Part shown: positions 2,816 to 43,100 of the stretch, piece after piece
How positions within the stretch are numbered: the stretch's first letter is position 1
Layout: each line of letters starts with the position of its first letter
Assembly: GCA_038496445.1 (NCBI GenBank)
Contig: JALMLS010000017.1
Coordinates: 62,001-126,000 of the forward strand
Reading direction: 5' to 3'
Origin: Trichosphaerium sp. ATCC 40318
Lineage: Eukaryota; Protista; Tubulinea
DNA: 64,000 bases
Made by a program: the position numbers and the translations under genes
The notes under the pieces: generated by a model
What the model was told of the DNA's origin: nothing
Databases searched by the model: none
Seen by the model: only the letters and a program-made list of their open reading frames with translations

Positions 2816-2969
2816 ATAATGTGACGCACAATTAAAAGAAAACACGAATAAATAAATAGGATTACAGTCACGTGAAAATTAGTAATATGCAAGCAACAAT
2901 TGTGTCATGAACTTACCCAAATAATTACCGTAATTGAACAGCTAACAACTCGTCACATCTTGCAACGAT

Positions 2970-4546
2970 ATGGTAGAGAATACTCGAGGATTGAATTCAT
3001 TGAATAGTCAGAGTACTCGCGTGCTCAGGTAGATCGCTATATTAAGCCTTATTTCTACAGTTGTGCACGTACATCACAACTATTACGATCATAATTACAA
3101 TATATCCTTGATTTCAAGGCCGTAGAAAGCTTAGCAAGCATGACAAACTGCATGACAATAGCCGAAACTGCGCTTGCCAAATATGCCGTAAGCGACCCTA
3201 CGAACGCTATGCACTGGGTTTCGTTTACAGTATGCTTTGAGGAGTGTAGATTAAACATAAACACGCTAAAAAATGCTTTTATGGCGGTGGTGTGCTCACA
3301 GGACAACTTGTGCGCGAGCTACAGTAAAACAAAGGATGGCACTTTACAAAAAAAATTTAATAACATAGATAGCATCAAACTGAGTGTAAAAGAGTTGCAC
3401 TACGACACAGAAGCAGAACTAGAGGCTCAACATGAAATATTACACAACGAATTATTACACTACACGCAATTGCCCCTTTTTAGGACATGGGTTTCGTATT
3501 GCGCGGAAACAAAGGGCTGTGCATACTTTAGTGTTGATATTCATCATCTTATTTGTGATGGTTTCTCCGTCCCGATGCTCATTTTCTACGTATTTAAGGT
3601 TTATAACCTTTCCAATACGTATTACATACCATCATGCGCTCTGAAAGGCCTTGGAATGTTGGCTGGACGGTTTTCTAGTCTATCAACTTTTTGTGCTGAA
3701 GAACGCAACGCTGTGTCGCGTATGAGCGAAAACGGCGGTAAACTCTTTGATAGTACTGATATTCAAAAGTACACTTCTTCCACGTGGGCCACCGATAGTA
3801 CTGTGTATGCAGAAGATGATTTTATGGTTACAACAATAGAACCGAGCAAGGAGATGATTGCAAACGCTAAACGGACTAGTATGACATTCAAACTTCCTCT
3901 GAATATTATCATGCTTTGTGCCCACCTATTGGCGCTACATAGGCTCTCTGATGACTCAAATAAAGAAAGAACTATGGCGTTCAGAATACCAGTTGCCCGA
4001 AGAGATAAAGCTCCTTACCAAATTGGGTATATTGTTGGGAATGTCATTGCCCAAATAAAGGTTGTACCAGGGATGAAATTGGGTGATATTCTTCAACACG
4101 TGCGAGACAGATTGAAGGAAGCAATGACGTATACAGTGATACCACACTGTCATATTGTAAAGAGATTAGATAAGACACAACCAAACTTGGAATTCAACTA
4201 TGTTCGTTTTGGAGCAACTAAGACTTACCTTGGAGATAAACCTTTCGGTAATTTTCTTGTCTTTGTCATTCTCTTTCATGCTTATGTGTATGTTTTAGGT
4301 TTTAAGCTTCGTCAGAATGTGGTTATGCTTGAAGATGGTCACAGGAAATCTTGGAGAGGTGATGAATACGAGATTGATATTTCTTTGATGGTGAATAACA
4401 GCGTACACCTCAACAAAATTATGTTTCAATACTGGACACGTAGAAATGCTTTCGTAGATGGCATGGCCAGACGTTTATTTGCAGTTATGGAAGAGTTGTT
4501 ATGCAGCTTTGCAAGTCAGTGTGACATACTACCTAGCAAGCTTTAG
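2970..4546 (+). CDS. Stand-alone NRPS-type condensation-domain / CoA-dependent acyltransferase, copy 1, C-terminal SKL
   Basis: 468-aa ORF with DIHHLICDG motif, PLFRTW, RIPVARRD..IGY; small upstream exons (ATG 2970, 8-nt exon 3061-3068) splice in frame; ends PSKL*. Confidence 0.8.
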
Positions 4547-5581
4547 TAATTAGCGCCAATTACAATGGTTAAAGTTCAGAGTAAAGTATATGTAGCGTAC
4601 TTGTAAACTACTTAGCCAAAACGTATTAGCACTCCTAGTGGTGCCTTATACTACAAACTGATTTTGAAATGTGAAAATAAAGTTGTTTATTTGCTTGGCA
4701 CGTGACTTAATTCAAACCAATGGGTGTACAATATCTCTGTGCGCTGAATAGCTAAAAGGGAATTTCTGCCACTCCAAATAGTGTCAGCCAACTTAAAACA
4801 TACTACAGAACACCAACTGTAAGTACAGCTCATAGTATAGAGAATTAAAAAAACGGTTTTGTTCGCACGATATGTTATGATACCTTTGACATGCTACACT
4901 ATTAACAAGTAACTCTGCCTGGTACTTGAAGGAGCACATACGCATGTAAGCTTTGCACTACATCATCAATTGGGTTTTTAACTACTTGTATTTGACACTT
5001 AGTTTTAGGTGTAACAGACTAACGAGATACTAAAGTTGATGTGCAAGTGCTATTCTCTACTTTCAAACAAATATGACCAAGTCTGTGCTTTGGCAGCCCA
5101 AATTCAATAGTAGTAAATAAGGCACGTGCTTGCTATTCATGACACTGTAGAACCAACAATAATACTACAGCATTACTTTAGTCTAAACACCTGGAATTAT
5201 CTCATGTCGGATAGTAAATGCCACTCGTATGGAAGCACAGCATATACCACATCGTTTTACAATATGCAAGTGTACATCGTTTTATTTTGCCTTTTTTAAG
5301 CAACCACAGGCACCTTACAATTGAGTTAACTCATAGCAAAGCTTCCAAAGCCAAACGGCAATACCCCAAAGTTAAGTTTTTCCAAGAGATGCAAAAGCAA
5401 CTCTTGGACACGCTAACCTGTCCATACGTTCTTTTTGACTATAGTTGCTGGTATTTCTTAAAGGGTTTTTGGGTTTGACAGGTAAGTAGCAAGACACCTC
5501 TACGCGAGTTACAATTGTCATGAACTTACAAAATAATTATCGTAATTGAACAGCTAACAACTCGTCACATCTTGCAACGAT

Positions 5582-7150
5582 ATGGTAGAGAATACTCGAG
5601 GATTGAATTCATTGAATAGTCAGAGTACTCACGTGATATAAATATAGCCTTATTTCTACAGTTGTGCACGTACATCACAACTATTGCGATCATAATTACA
5701 ATATATCCTTGATTTCAAGGCCTTAGAAAGCTTAGCAAGCATGACAAACTGCATGACAATAGCCGAAACTGCGCTTGCCAAATATGCCGTAAGCGACCCT
5801 ACGAATGCTATGCACTGGGTTTCGTTTACAGTATGCTTTGAGGAGTGTAGATTAAACATAAACACGCTAAAAGATGCTTTTATGGCGGTGGTGTGCTCAC
5901 AGGACAACTTGCGGGCGAGCTACACTAAAACAGAGGATGGCACTTTACAAAAAACATTTAATAACATAGATAGCATCAAACTGAGTGTAAAAGAGTTGCA
6001 CTACGACACAGAAGCAGAACTAGAGGCTCAACATGAACTATTACACAACGAATTATTACACTACACGCAATTGCCCCTTTTTAGGACATGGGTCTCGTAC
6101 TGCGCGGAAACAAAGGGCTGTGCATACTTCAGTGTTGATATTCATCATTTGATTTGTGATGCGTTATCCGTCCCGATGCTCATTTTCTACGTATTTAAGG
6201 TTTATAACCTTTCCAATTCGTATTACATACCATCATGCGCTCTGAAAGGTCTTGGGATGTTGGCTGGACGGTTTTCTAGTCTATCAACTTTTTGTGCTGA
6301 AGAACGCAACGCTGTGTCGCGTATGAGCGAAAACGGCGGTAAACTCTTTGAGTGTACTGATATTCAAAAGTACACTTCTTCCACGTGGGCCTCTGAGAGT
6401 ACTGTGTATGCAGAAGATGATTTTATGGTTACAACAATAAAACCGAGTGATGAGATGATTGCAAACGCTAAACGTACTTGTGCGAGATTTAAACTTCCTC
6501 TGAATATTATCATACTTTGCGCCCACCTATTGGCACTACATAAGATCTCCGGTGACTCAAATAAAGAAAGAACTATGGCGGTCAGAATACCAGTTGGCCG
6601 TAGAGATAAGGCTCCGTTTCAAATTGGGTATGTTGCCAGCAATATCATTGCCCAAATCAAAATTGTACGTCGGATGAAACTGGGTGATATTCTTCAACAC
6701 GCGCAACAAAGGATTAAAGAGGCAATGACTTATACAGCGATACCACACTGTCATATTGTAAAGAGGTTAGATAAGACACAACCAAACTTGGAATTCAACT
6801 ATGTTCGTTTTGGAGCTACTACTAACAATTACCATGGTAATAAACCATTGGGTACTTTTCTTGTTTTGTTTATACTCTTTGCCGATCACGTGTATGTTTT
6901 AGGTTTTAAGCTTCGTCAGAATGTGGTTATGCTTGAAGATGGTCACAGGAAATCTTGGAGAGGTGACGAGTATGAGATTGATATTTCTTTGATGGTGAAT
7001 AACAGTTCACACCTAAACAAAATTATGTTTCAATACTGGACACGTAGAAATGCTTTTGTAGATGGCATGGCCAGACGTTTATTTGAAGTTACTGAAGAGT
7101 TGTTATATAGCTTTGCGAGTCAGTGTGACGTCCTACCTAGCAAGCTATAA
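5582..7150 (+). CDS. Stand-alone condensation-domain protein, copy 2, C-terminal SKL
   Basis: Near-identical paralog of 2970-4546; DIHHLICDA; ends PSKL*. Confidence 0.8.
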
Positions 7151-7583
7151 AGTACTTGTTGTAGTGTCGTGTGACAAGGTTAGCTAAATAAATAATCGCC
7201 ACTAGTGCTTGTGTTAGCGCCACCTAGCTTATATACCAACTCCAAACAAGTCCAAGACTCCTGTCCCTCTACAATAACCCTCATGTAGCATACTTACGTT
7301 TTTCTGTTTTCAACCGGAATAAATAAATCCGCCGGCTTATTCGTAGTGTTTGCAATTTTTGTATTATTATCGTAACTAACCCACTACGTCATTGCGCTCA
7401 TTTTAAGACAAATTCAACGGAGAAAAATGTCCGTACCTATCTCCGTCGGTTCGTATGGACCGTGACTTAAACTCATAATTTCGTAAAGTTCAGCCTTTAC
7501 GGATCAAAAGCAGACTTTATAACACCTTAAAATCTCATTTCGACCATTGTATACGCGTATCTATCACCTCAAACGCTTTAACG

Positions 7584-9898
7584 ATGGATCTACATTCGAG
7601 AAACTTCATGATGCTCTTAATTGCTCTTATAATCGCTTGTACCATACCCACACATGCGTCTACGCTTTCATGGCAAAGTGTAAACCTGCTAGAACAAGAA
7701 TTCAATTCTACGTCAAACTCAACTGAAGAACTAGTATACTGTACTAGCTATCGTACTTGCGAAGAAGGCGAAGCATGTTTTAATAACACGTGTAGGCAAG
7801 TACCCATTTTATAACAAAGTCTTTTCTTCTTAAACTAGAGTAGCGTTTGCTTGAACGACGAGATGTGCAAAGCAGACAAGTCTGTCAACAGATGCTTCAT
7901 GCCATCAGATGGGAACATATGCAGTCATAAATATCTATTTACTGATGTACGTTCTCTACTCTTTAACAAAAAGTCACCTTTAAAAAAACTATTTATCAAA
8001 AAGTGGGAAACAGGCAACTTTGTTTGTCACGTGTCCTGGTGAGCATACGCCACTATTCCATCAATGAGTGGTAAATATTTTCAAGTTGGTTGCTCAAGTG
8101 GGGAACTGTTCACGTGGCAATAGCCCTTTGTTTTGGTTGTAGAAAACGATCATTTCTAGTATTGCGGCAACAACCTTTAACCCCAGTTTTAGATATCATG
8201 GCGTGATTTTATGACTATGTTCTTAGCGGCAGTAGGTGGCGCTGTTGCTAGTGCAGGAGGTACGCTTTTATATTTATGAATTTCTATCCGAGAAATTTCT
8301 ACGCGAAAGTAGTTAGAACTTTCACGTGACCGAAAAGGCGTTTTTGTAAACTAAGCAAAACTTTAAGGTATTGGAGGTGGTGGCGTGTTCGTACCAATTC
8401 TAATTATGGTGGCCGGATTTAGCGCTAGAGAAGCTGTCCCAATATCCAATGCAGTCATTCTTGGCGTTGTAATTACTAATAATATTCAAATGATGCGCAT
8501 GCATCACCCTACAGTAAGTTCTTGTGATAAATTACCTTACGTTCTTACACAAAAAAAGGCTGATAGACCTCTCATTGATTACGACCTCGCACTTGTGTTA
8601 CAACCGCTAGCACTGAGTGGTACTATAGTTGGTGTAGTTCTGAATCAAATATTCCCAGATTGGTTGACTCTCGCTCTTCTCCTTATCACTTTACTGGTGG
8701 CAGCCTATAGATCGTTTATGAAGGTAACCTAGAATAACACGTGATCAGTTTCTAATAATCCTAGGGCTTGGGGATGGCCAAACTAGAAAATCGTATAAAT
8801 AAACAAGGAAAGCAAGGCGACACTGAACTAGAAGATAAATCGAAAGGAGAAGACCCTGACACTGAGTCTGGTAGTACGCAATCAGACGCTTCAGATGAAG
8901 AAGCCGAGACAGAGCCCAAAGTAGCAAAGAGATTGCAAAAAATCCTTAAAGCAGAATCCATTCAGTACCCAATTGTGAAGATATTGCTTATGCTAGCCAT
9001 CTTGGCTGTATTGACTATTCACTCATTTATGAGCGGCGGAAAGAGAGGTTAGGGCATCACTCAGCAAAAAAATATACTAACGCGACTATTGTAGGTGGTA
9101 GTATTGTTGGCATAAAGACATGCTCTGCGGTGTACTGGCTAGTATACTTTGGTATATTTCCTGTCTTTCTAGGTTTTGTGTTCTTTATTGGTTTGTATCT
9201 CATCAGAAAAGAGAAGACGAAGAAAGCTGCAATAGAGTACAGCCACGCAGTATGCTATTGAAACAATCATTGTAATAATTAACTAAGTCTTTGTAATAGA
9301 AAGGAGACTTGAAGTGGACGATTGGAACAACAGTGCTTGTATCAAGTCTAAGCATAACAGTTGGTTTACTTGCTTCTCTTCTTGGTCTTGGCGGTGGTGC
9401 TATATTGTCACCTATTCTTGTATGTCACGTGACATAAGAACTATTTAATATTAACCATTATATAGTTCGAGTTGGGAGTTCTTCCTGAAGTCACAGCTGC
9501 AACATCCAGTTTCATGATTGTAAGTCTTCACAGTTTTTCTACCTTGAATCTTGTCCCTTATTTTTTTGTAGTTGTTTACAGCTAGTGCTGCATTAATACA
9601 GTTTGGTGTATACAAACGCCTAGTATGGGATTATACCTTGGCGTTCATTTTTGTAGGATTGATGGCGTCTGTTATAGGTACTGATATCACATGATGGATG
9701 ATCTTTTCTTATTTTTTATCAGGGCGCGTTGGTATCACTTATATCATCAAGAAATACAAGAAAAAATCCTGGATTGTTTTTGCTGTTGTAGCCATCCTTA
9801 TCTTGAGTGCTATATTACTCGTTGTAGTAGGACTTATAGATCTTGTTCAAGACATCAAGATTGGCGGACATCTCGGATTCACAGACTTTTGTAGCTAA
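7584..9898 (+). CDS. Sulfite exporter TauE/SafE family membrane protein with signal peptide and Cys-rich N-terminal domain
   Basis: ASAGGIGGGGVFVPILI, RPLIDYDLALVLQPLALSGTIVGVVLNQIFPDW, SLLGLGGGAILSP, GVLPEVTAATSSFM. Confidence 0.88.
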
Positions 9899-40125: not shown

Positions 40126-43100
40126 ATGTTTCTTGATGATTATATCCTCCAAGGAGGTTAAAAAACGGTTTTGGAACCGTTTCCACGTCGCGCGCAAGTT
40201 TGACTTTTTGAAAATACGCATTATCTTTACTGCTGGTCCATCTATAATAGCGTGTTGGTGAGAGTGAGCATTGGTTAAAAGTAGGATATGGGGTACGTTT
40301 TATGCTTTTTTTGTATTCCGTATTTGAAAACAATTGTTTGTATTGTACACTCGCGTGTTTAGAGTACCTTCCAGTATATTTTACGTCTTTGTAATTTAAT
40401 TGTTTAGAAATACCGTGAGTACGGTGGACACAAACGCGAGGTACGTGTGCCAGCGTAAAAGGTAAATTGTAAAACTCTCAACTAACAAAAACTAGTATTG
40501 TTCTTGAAAGTCCCTTAAAACTCCAAAGCGAGTGGTTAAAGGCTTGGAACAACCGCTGGCTACAATTAACAGTGCAGGATCTTCGTTATTACCGTTATTT
40601 CACAGACCTGAAAGACAAAGATACTGTATTACGTGGACAAGTTGCTATAAACAAAGTAGCGTCAGCTGCGTTAAAAAATAAGTGCAAAGTACGCCTTTTA
40701 ATTGAAAAACAAGCTAAACAAGACATAGGATGGATTATTTTTGTTTGAGATTGTGACGCCTAGCCGAAACTTTCTGTTTGGAGCCAAGACACTAGCTAGA
40801 GCGCGTTTGTGGGTTAGCACAATTAATAAGGTTAGAGATGGAGAGATACAGGCATGTCAATTACCTTTTTTTTGAATTATACTAATAATCTCTAGACTTC
40901 CGAAGATGCTTTCCTTACGACAACTTGTCGAACCAATAGTGATGGTCTTATTGTTGATCGAGATCTAAGAGTATTCCAGTCCCTCATACGTAGGTATTTA
41001 GCATGGCAAAAGCTTTGTGTATTACGCGAACAAAGTACCTCACGTGACTTATTGGTGATTGATGAACAACATAAAAAATCTGTCATTATTCAGAGTGTGT
41101 GGCGTGGTTATGCCGTAAGAAAGAGCCAAAAAGAACAGCATTTGGCTGCTTCAAGAATACAAAGTACTTGGCGAGGTGTAGCGATGCGAAAACAATTAAA
41201 TCAAGAGCACATTTCTGCAACTAAAATTCAATCAATCTGGAGAGGTCATAGCACTAGAACAAAACAGCAGAGTTACCGTGATGCAATAATTAAAGTACAG
41301 AGCACTTGGCGAGGGTACGTGGCTAGAATGCAGCGTTTAAGAGCAGAGAAAGCAGCAGCTAAGGTACAAAGAGCATGGCGCGCTTTTTGCGCTTGGCGCA
41401 AGTATAAACAAGAGAAACAAAAACTACAATCAGCAGCTGTCACAGTACAAAGTCTGTGGAAGGGTGTTATGACTAGGAAACTACAAACATCTAAACAAAA
41501 TGCTGCTGTGGTCGTACAGAACACGTGGCGTAATTATGTTTCAAGAAAAAAGAGTAAACGAGAACAACTTGCAGCTATTAAGGTTCAAAGTTTATGGCGT
41601 GGAGTGATGTCTCGTAATCTACAAAAAACTCAAAGTGGTGCTGCTATAAAGCTACAGAGTGTATGGCGTGGACACGCTACAAGGCTTGAGCAAAAGCGAG
41701 CGTCAAAAGCTGCATCTAAACTACAGAGTTTGTGGCATGGTGTGATGACACGGACGCAACAAAACTTGGAAAATGACGCTGCTATTAAAGTCCAAAGCGC
41801 TTGGCGTGGTTACTCAACAAGATCTGAGAAACAAAAAACAGATGAAGCTGTAACTAAAGTTCAAAGTCTATGGCGTGGACGAGCAATTAGAAAATTGACT
41901 GGTACACAACAAAAGGCAGCAATAGCTATACAACAAACTTGGCGTAAATACAAAGATGAACAAAAAGCTTTAGAGCAGGCTTATGCTGCAATACGGATAC
42001 AAGCAGGTATAGTTATATCATTCTTATGTTATTAGTATACTAATGATCATTATTAGCGTATAAGGGCTTCAAAGCACGTCAACAGTATGCTGCTATGCGT
42101 GAAGAAAATGAAGAGTTTGATTTAGAGGCTGAGCTTGGTAAGTAAATTGGTTATGTTTTAGGTTTGTTTTTTGCTTATCTCTAGTCGAAGATGATTCTTT
42201 GGTTGCAAACTTGAAGGTCTTGGATGAAGCCGCAGTTGATTCTGATGAAGGAAATTCTGTCGGCATGGATCAAGATGAGGATGATACCACTTATGAGGGT
42301 ACTCACCAAAATCACTTTTTCTTTTTTGCTGAACATGTCACTTACATTTGATGTTTAAGAAGAACAAGAGAGGCTTGCTTCTTTGTTGGAAGGTCTTGGT
42401 AGTAATAAGAGTAGAAAAGGGGGATCACATAGAAGTGTCACAAGTTTATTTGATCCACCTCCTAAACCTATCACTACAAAAACACCAACAACCCCTATAA
42501 GGATAAAAAAAGTTGCAAATAGATTTGATAATGTATTCCGACCTTTGACACCTCCTGTAAAGTCAAGTGCTCCAATTGATTCGGAAGAACCGTATGTTTC
42601 TACTTCTGTCGAATCTGGAGAAGGAATTGAGGAAGAGGAAGAGGAATTCTTTGATCTTGAAGATGAACTTGATGCTGCAGGCATAGATGGAGATAGCCTG
42701 AAAGAAGAATCTTTCCTCGAGAACTTACCAGAAATGAGCGATGTAAAAGCAGAAGATGATACAGGTATTGAAGACGAAGATCCTGTTGATGAAGATGATG
42801 CTGAAGAAGATAGTGGAGAAGAATACGAGGACTTTGATGATGATTTAGAAGATGGTCTAGATGATCCAGACCTTGATAGTCTTATGGCTAATCTACAAAC
42901 TATGAATGAAAATATCGAGGACGAAGAAGAGGTATGTCTTGTTGGTCAAGAAAAATAACCCAAGAACCATGTTTCTTCTTTTTGTGGATACACACAAACT
43001 CAAGCTAATTGTAGGAGGAGCTGTCTGATACAGAAGATCCTGAGGATGCTTTGGATGATAAACACACAAAAGAGTCTTTATTTCATGATGTAGGCGCAGA

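Follow-up and report, generated by a model that had tools for sequence, protein, structure and literature searches.

In non-ribosomal peptide synthesis, the condensation (C) domains catalyse bond formation, and most of the characterised ones take donors that are bound to a carrier protein through a phosphopantetheine tether. The free-standing C enzymes VibH, SgcC5 and PapA are prized as simple catalysts that form amides or esters; VibH acts in trans with VibB, and PapA2, like the starter C domains, also uses acyl-coenzyme A (acyl-CoA). Peroxisomes harbor the carnitine acetyl- and octanoyl-transferases (CrAT and CROT), acyl-CoA-dependent enzymes of the chloramphenicol acetyltransferase (CAT)-like structural superfamily, which possess a catalytic His and bear a type 1 peroxisomal targeting signal (PTS1). 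In fungi, they also host steps of natural-product synthesis, such as those of the penicillin acyltransferase IAT, the siderophore enzymes SidF, SidH and SidI, and the AK-toxin enzymes, all of which are PTS-tagged and perform tailoring reactions that use acyl-CoA; to our knowledge, none of them is a condensation-domain protein. Here we analyzed a stretch of 64,000 nucleotides (termed the window) from Trichosphaerium sp. ATCC 40318 (contig JALMLS010000017.1, positions 62,001 to 126,000, forward strand), which contains a tandem gene pair, copy 1 and copy 2, encoding single-domain condensation proteins that both end in Ser-Lys-Leu (SKL). The pair probably represents free-standing and catalytically competent C enzymes that are imported into peroxisomes and transfer acyl groups, with acyl-CoA as the simplest donor.

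Compared to the known systems, the two proteins in this working model share with VibH, SgcC5, PapA5 and PapA2 a free-standing HHxxxD(G) condensation fold that couples a thioester donor with an amine or alcohol in soluble form; moreover, PapA2 uses acyl-CoA, as proposed for the window proteins. However, these enzymes come from bacteria, reside in the cytosol and have their genes in biosynthetic clusters, and they show no specific sequence affinity to the pair. The elongation-type C domains of TomB, TycC and PvdL, and of the Roseivirga, Flavobacterium and Paenibacillus synthetases, are the best matches in both sequence and structure, and they share the two-lobed fold and the motifs C3 and C5; yet they reside within megasynthetases beside adenylation (A) and peptidyl carrier protein (PCP) domains, have an identity of ~24% or less, and diverge in the other motifs. 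In contrast to the pair, CrAT and CROT belong to the family PF00755, to which the Pfam scan revealed no similarity, and they serve housekeeping acyl export rather than the chemistry of non-ribosomal peptide synthetases (NRPSs). The enzymes of the fungal peroxisomal pathways come from fungi, whereas the pair comes from an amoeboid protist. No description of a peroxisome-targeted condensation-domain protein of the PF00668 type was found in the searchable full-text literature. The statement of the original prediction that no example has been described thus needs to be limited to a PF00668-type C domain with a PTS1, as far as the literature found goes, and does not extend to the superfamily at large, in which the PTS1-bearing CrAT and CROT are classical. 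Free-standing C enzymes, PTS1-bearing acyl-CoA acyltransferases and fungal peroxisomal pathways are each known; a condensation-domain pair ending in a PTS1 looks like a new combination. The open reading frames (ORFs) and the key motifs of the pair are as follows.

3140-4546, + strand: copy 1 ORF, 468 aa (read-through)
3542-3562, + strand: copy 1 catalytic motif HHLICDG (C3), residues 135-141
4535-4543, + strand: copy 1 Ser-Lys-Leu, PTS1-type tripeptide (agc aag ctt)
5741-7150, + strand: copy 2 ORF, 469 aa (read-through)
6143-6163, + strand: copy 2 motif HHLICDA, in which Ala replaces the Gly of HHxxxDG, and the catalytic His and Asp are kept
7139-7147, + strand: copy 2 Ser-Lys-Leu (agc aag cta)

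Sequence comparison confirmed that both copies are members of the NRPS condensation-domain family, in which they form a very divergent subfamily. With a gathering cut-off of 30.6 bits, Pfam PF00668 (Condensation) matched copy 1 at 54.6 bits (E 9.8e-15) and copy 2 at 61.7 bits (E 7e-17), and no other Pfam family was found in either copy at E<=1. All searches were run with the read-through ORF, including the segment of the probable intron described below. NCBIfam yielded only a match to a generic NRPS subfamily, far below its cut-off, and features from a protein language model pointed to Condensation clusters with a score of 0.99. The residues H135, H136, D140 and G141 occupy invariant or near-invariant columns in an alignment of 71 rows of C domains. 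The motif HHxxxD(G), which had been claimed for both proteins, is present in both as far as HHxxxD, whereas its final glycine is found only in copy 1. Among the C-domain motifs, C3 (HHxxxDG) and C5 (R...IGxxxN) are the only ones that are well preserved.

The AlphaFold model generated from this 71-row alignment has a predicted local distance difference test (pLDDT) score of 79.1 and a predicted template modelling (pTM) score of 0.82, and it recovers the two-lobed, V-shaped CAT-like fold. Most of exon 1 of copy 1 has a pLDDT of 80-96, and low confidence is limited to residues 210-225 and 359-405. Structural similarity search of this model using Foldseek matched solved C domains, including those of Txo2, TomB, TycC, MokA, CmnI, fuscachelin, LgrA and SrfA-C, with a probability of 1.0 and a template modelling (TM) score of 0.70-0.75. 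In addition, a profile of the subfamily searched against the Protein Data Bank (PDB) gave elongation-type C domains as the best matches (TomB-C, 1.9e-15; TycC, 5.4e-15; PvdL, 3e-14), followed by epimerisation domains (1.7e-8), fungal CT domains (9e-7) and the X domain (6.5e-6), and finally by PapA2 (1.3e-4), heterocyclisation domains (6.5e-4), starter C domains (1e-3) and SgcC5 (2.8e-3); VibH and PapA5 were not among the matches at E<=0.01. Altogether, Pfam, the PDB profile search, and AlphaFold with Foldseek bear out the condensation-domain (CAT-fold) identity that had been proposed. By contrast, the affinities to WS/DGAT, PapA5 and AATase named at the same time were not supported, given that the nearest structures are elongation-type NRPS C domains. 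An identity as WS/DGAT, PapA5, BAHD or AATase was rejected, with only Condensation found in Pfam and an E-value of 1.3e-4 for PapA2 versus 1e-15 for NRPS C domains.

The two proteins stand alone within the window. Four giant NRPSs with A, PCP, C, epimerisation (E) and thioesterase (TE) domains served as tblastn queries at E<=1, and they detected no adenylation, carrier or TE domain in the whole 64 kb; their only matches were these two ORFs, both of which are single-domain. This agrees with the earlier claim that no adenylation or carrier domain is attached to the pair or present elsewhere in the window, and the arrangement of a modular NRPS, in which the C domain is fused to or lies beside A and carrier domains, is not seen here. 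Nor did the spacers at 4547-5520 and 7151-8384 reveal a convincing coding ORF or a partner gene between or just past the copies. These findings bear on the alternative that the proteins act in trans with a carrier-containing synthetase encoded elsewhere, rather than on free acyl-CoA, as VibH does with VibB; the SKL may then still direct the proteins, together with piggy-backed partners, to peroxisomes. The preference of most characterised C domains for phosphopantetheine-tethered donors speaks for it, as does the fact that the nearest solved structures are elongation-type domains of multimodular NRPSs. On the other hand, neither an A nor a PCP domain is encoded within the 64 kb, and the bacterial relatives of the pair are not located beside NRPS genes on their short contigs. 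On balance, we consider a role in trans unlikely.

Both proteins terminate in ...LPSKL, and hence match the PTS1 consensus (S/A/C)-(K/R/H)-(L/M) at the extreme C-terminus. As originally reported, they share the ending PSKL but differ in the last codon and the stop, copy 1 closing with ctt tag and copy 2 with cta taa. The SKL is indeed kept between the copies; as evidence, however, its retention counts for little because the paralogues are 88% identical (415/469 residues). A stronger point is the chance expectation, which at a C-terminus is ~5e-4 for the exact SKL and ~3.5e-3 for the wider PTS1 consensus. Residues 458-468 of copy 1, which lie past the last helix, adopt a coil in the AlphaFold model, and the N-terminus, judged by eye, has no hydrophobic or presequence-like stretch. 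The protist proteins end just past the last helix of the domain and are shorter-tailed than P0008 and P0037, the two bacterial relatives described below. It is therefore likely, as far as the sequence can tell, that the PTS1 is functional in targeting.

An alternative is that the SKL is fortuitous or non-functional, and that the proteins are cytosolic stand-alone C acyltransferases, or that the transcripts end differently from the ORFs. The SKL is carried by only two close paralogues, whose 88% identity would be expected to conserve it; it is absent from the bacterial relatives, and an acidic residue (D) is located at position -7 or -8. These points are countered by the low chance of an exact SKL (~5e-4) and by a tail that is predicted to be unstructured and exposed. 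Moreover, the longer tails of the bacterial relatives are cut back in the protist proteins precisely to a short stretch that finishes with SKL, and the similarity of the paralogues stops at the stop codon. We therefore regard a fortuitous SKL as distinctly improbable. The last of these observations corroborates the initial note, which had described that the DNA similarity ends at the stop: the identity between the copies is ~92.5% in the exons and drops to ~50%, a random level, right past the stop. As the similarity ends there, a conserved downstream exon, and hence splicing beyond the SKL into a further exon, is unlikely.

An exhaustive search of 1.84 billion representative proteins returned 207 matches with E<=1e-3, of which none reached E<=1e-30; over the matched stretches, the top ten are 24-29% identical. 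The majority of them are giant bacterial NRPSs, the scores of which are summed over many C domains, and the named ones belong to Roseivirga, Flavobacterium, Paenibacillus and cyanobacteria. When single domains are compared, P0037 (550 aa; Logan SRR33375184, on a gammaproteobacterial contig) and P0008 (497 aa; JGI metagenome 3300050212), both free-standing, match best. Similar to the window proteins, both are single-domain proteins of similar length, and they share the motifs DPxNxxH (near the N-terminus), RIP, IGY, P-x-C, QPNxEFN and WxGxxYxIxxS, which are absent from canonical C domains. Of the C3 motif (SHxxxDG in P0037), they retain the Asp and the second His at a minimum, and they cluster with the window proteins in a clade with an SH-like approximate likelihood ratio test (SH-aLRT) support of 99. 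Despite these similarities, the two relatives differ from the pair in being bacterial and only 20-24% identical to it, in lacking both the SKL and an intron-sized insert, and in having C-terminal extensions of 30-70 residues. Both are encoded on compact bacterial contigs: the neighbours of P0037 are an oligopeptidase A, with 55% identity to the enzymes of Methylophaga, Methylomonas and other gammaproteobacteria, and a RES-Xre toxin-antitoxin pair, whereas P0008 adjoins FeoC.

Two further features were observed in these bacterial loci. Residues ~500-550 of P0037 (L001:1620-1774) constitute a glycine-rich hydrophobic end (...LPTLGTVAGAAVVGGLAARRLMR) with a weak match to the DUF883_C glycine zipper (E 0.008); this stretch may be a membrane anchor at the place of the protist SKL. 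Upstream of P0008, a 154-aa ORF without a Pfam match (L002:154-618) ends 12 nt before the gene; given this spacing, it is probably co-transcribed with P0008 and could encode a partner protein of the C-domain subfamily.

Copy 1 drew no match in a word-index protein search; the subfamily profile, used in the same search, retrieved P0037 and otherwise just P0153, a canonical C fragment that is unrelated. Pattern scans based on the subfamily alignment detected no further relatives in GTDB genomes, JGI metagenomes (scanned a second time with the bacterial member in first place) or IMG/VR. The subfamily has four members among about 15 billion proteins. Protein searches revealed no orthologues in other eukaryotes; the collection of 15 billion proteins does not contain the ORFs of this genome, so the lack of such orthologues says little. 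Altogether, the data fit, but do not prove, an old bacterial origin followed by the gain of an intron and a PTS1. The horizontal origin that had been suggested at the outset would fit the finding that specific relatives are confined to free-standing C proteins of bacteria.

Comparison of the two copies yielded 43.5 synonymous differences over 281 sites and 54.5 non-synonymous differences over 1069 sites, corresponding to a dS of 0.174, a dN of 0.053 and a dN/dS of 0.30. This ratio is far from neutral, which indicates that the pair has been under purifying selection since duplication. The result bears on a further alternative, in which the genes are decaying or silent relics of horizontal transfer, or encode non-catalytic scaffolds similar to the X domain of glycopeptide NRPSs. 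Such a fate would be consistent with the strong divergence of most C motifs other than C3 and C5, with the HHxxxDA of copy 2, and with the failure of protein searches to find orthologues in other eukaryotes. However, both frames of 468-469 codons are intact, the departure from neutrality is strong, and the catalytic His and Asp are present in both copies, as is the second His in both bacterial relatives. Relics or scaffolds therefore appear very improbable.

We propose instead that the pair functions as peroxisomal acyltransferases; within this proposal we infer the import, the type of donor, the acceptor, the product and the bacterial-to-protist transfer. The proteins would be imported into peroxisomes via the PEX5/PTS1 route, and the second His of HHxxxD (H136) would serve as a catalytic base or a positioning residue. 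A thioester donor would pass its acyl group on to an acceptor with an amine or a hydroxyl, giving an N-acyl or O-acyl metabolite. Given that no carrier protein is encoded nearby and that the address is peroxisomal, the donor would most simply be peroxisomal acyl-CoA.

Several points weigh against this proposal. The characterised C domains mostly need carrier-bound donors, and the window offers no such partner. The motifs C1, C2, C4, C6 and C7 are strongly diverged from those of canonical C domains, so that the substrates are not predictable and a non-catalytic role is conceivable; in addition, copy 2 is devoid of the motif glycine. The result on the fold depends in part on the Pfam result, as the alignment given to AlphaFold was made of C domains, and the model predicted from the single sequence reached a pLDDT of only 34. 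Moreover, the branches of the clade with P0008 and P0037 are very long. With relatives that are only 20-25% identical, the transfer, if real, must be old, and both origin and direction are uncertain.

A more far-reaching scenario, which we put forward only tentatively, is that a rare bacterial C enzyme has been domesticated by the protist, gaining an intron and a PTS1 and undergoing duplication. The pair might then bring NRPS-type amide or ester formation to peroxisomes, either with acyl-CoAs from beta-oxidation as donors or by complementing a synthetase in trans, and might produce N- or O-acyl signalling or defence lipids. If true, it would be, as far as the literature found goes, the first peroxisomal condensation-domain enzyme, and also a non-fungal example of natural-product chemistry in peroxisomes, which would extend the peroxisomal compartmentation of specialised metabolism beyond fungi and connect the acyl-CoA pool of peroxisomes with chemistry of the NRPS type. 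It would also exemplify how a bacterial gene may turn into an organellar enzyme of a eukaryote through intron gain, tail trimming and PTS1 gain. The rarity of the subfamily and the strongly diverged substrate-lining motifs suggest that the chemistry could be unusual. At present the pair is of moderate interest, which depends on its expression and localization.

Each copy is a compact gene with 1.4 kb of coding sequence and probably contains a single 51-nt in-frame intron, which gives the following exon structure.

3140-4247, + strand: copy 1 exon 1, residues 1-369 and the first base of codon 370, covering the N-lobe and most of the C-lobe
4248-4298, + strand: copy 1 probable spliceosomal intron of 51 nt and phase 1, with the ends GTAATT...TTTTAG; it keeps the frame and has no stops
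4299-4546, + strand: copy 1 exon 2, ending with the stop TAG (4544-4546)
5741-6851, + strand: copy 2 exon 1, ORF with the Pfam Condensation match (E 7e-17)
6852-6902, + strand: copy 2 probable intron, 51 nt, phase 1, GTACTT...TTTTAG
6903-7150, + strand: copy 2 exon 2, ending with the stop TAA (7148-7150)

The alignment with the bacterial relatives P0008 and P0037 has a gap exactly at this 51-nt segment. Between the copies, the segment is ~78% identical versus 92.5% for the exons, with conserved splice-site ends; upon read-through, 6 of its 17 residues differ, and the neutral-like divergence is confined to it. The read-through product is a T-rich hydrophobic string, which has a pLDDT of 30-36 in AlphaFold. 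In the upstream GCD14/TRM61 gene, which codes for a tRNA methyltransferase, the last intron (2712-2766) is 55 nt long with the ends GTATGT...TGTAG, providing a local reference for intron size. The bacterial gap, the lower identity between the paralogues, the low pLDDT and this 55-nt GT-AG intron together make an intron probable. Downstream of it, exon 2 of copy 1 contributes the last helix, whose counterpart in the alignment is the final helix of canonical C domains.

The duplicated unit extends from ~221 nt 5' of the ATG (starting at 2919 and 5531) through the stop codon, and thus includes an upstream region common to the two copies.

2919-3139, + strand: copy 1 upstream region, candidate promoter or 5' untranslated region (UTR), common to copy 2
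5531-5740, + strand: copy 2 upstream region, common to copy 1

These regions are ~88% identical with indels, versus 49% farther upstream, and the direct repeats D3 and D1 in the copy 1 region are 96-98% identical to 5531-5740. Between the copies, the unit is much more alike in its 5' part (2919-3680 versus 5531-6280) than in the rest, and the dS is 0.08 over the first 180 codons versus 0.24 over the remainder. The lower 5' divergence, both in dS and in the upstream sequence, suggests gene conversion of the 5' half after duplication. The two units are separated by a spacer of ~1 kb of unrelated and apparently non-coding sequence.

Coding probably starts at ATG 3140 and ATG 5741. The original prediction placed the beginning at 2970; however, the frame of ATG 2971 is a different one, and a TAA at 3092, 5' of ATG 3140, interrupts the main frame, which makes ATG 3140 the likelier start. 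Consistently, both the Pfam match and the bacterial relatives begin at approximately residue 1-25 of the 3140 ORF. An upstream coding exon from ATG 2971 was considered and rejected, since it is out of frame, the candidate acceptors reach stops, and the in-frame TAA intervenes. A short ATG-initiated frame (MVENTRGLNSLNSQSTR...) at 2971-3029 and 5583-5640 is kept in both 5' regions, outside the main frame; it could be an upstream ORF, or merely a piece of the duplicated promoter or 5' UTR.

Stop-free stretches of the window reach their greatest lengths in the two copies, with 484 and 483 codons versus 379 in the next one, in accord with the earlier remark that such long coding exons are unusual here. 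The pair is flanked by eukaryotic, intron-bearing genes, namely GCD14/TRM61 upstream and TauE downstream. Its GC content is 0.41, and that at third codon positions (GC3) is 0.40, compared to 0.34-0.49 and 0.26-0.43, respectively, for the host exons. Eukaryotic flanks and host-like GC and GC3 exclude contamination and indicate that any transfer was not recent; the intron-like insert likewise argued for rejecting both contamination and a very recent transfer. Elsewhere in the window, 41052-42035 is occupied by a long exon that encodes many IQ calmodulin-binding motifs (Pfam IQ, E 1e-48).

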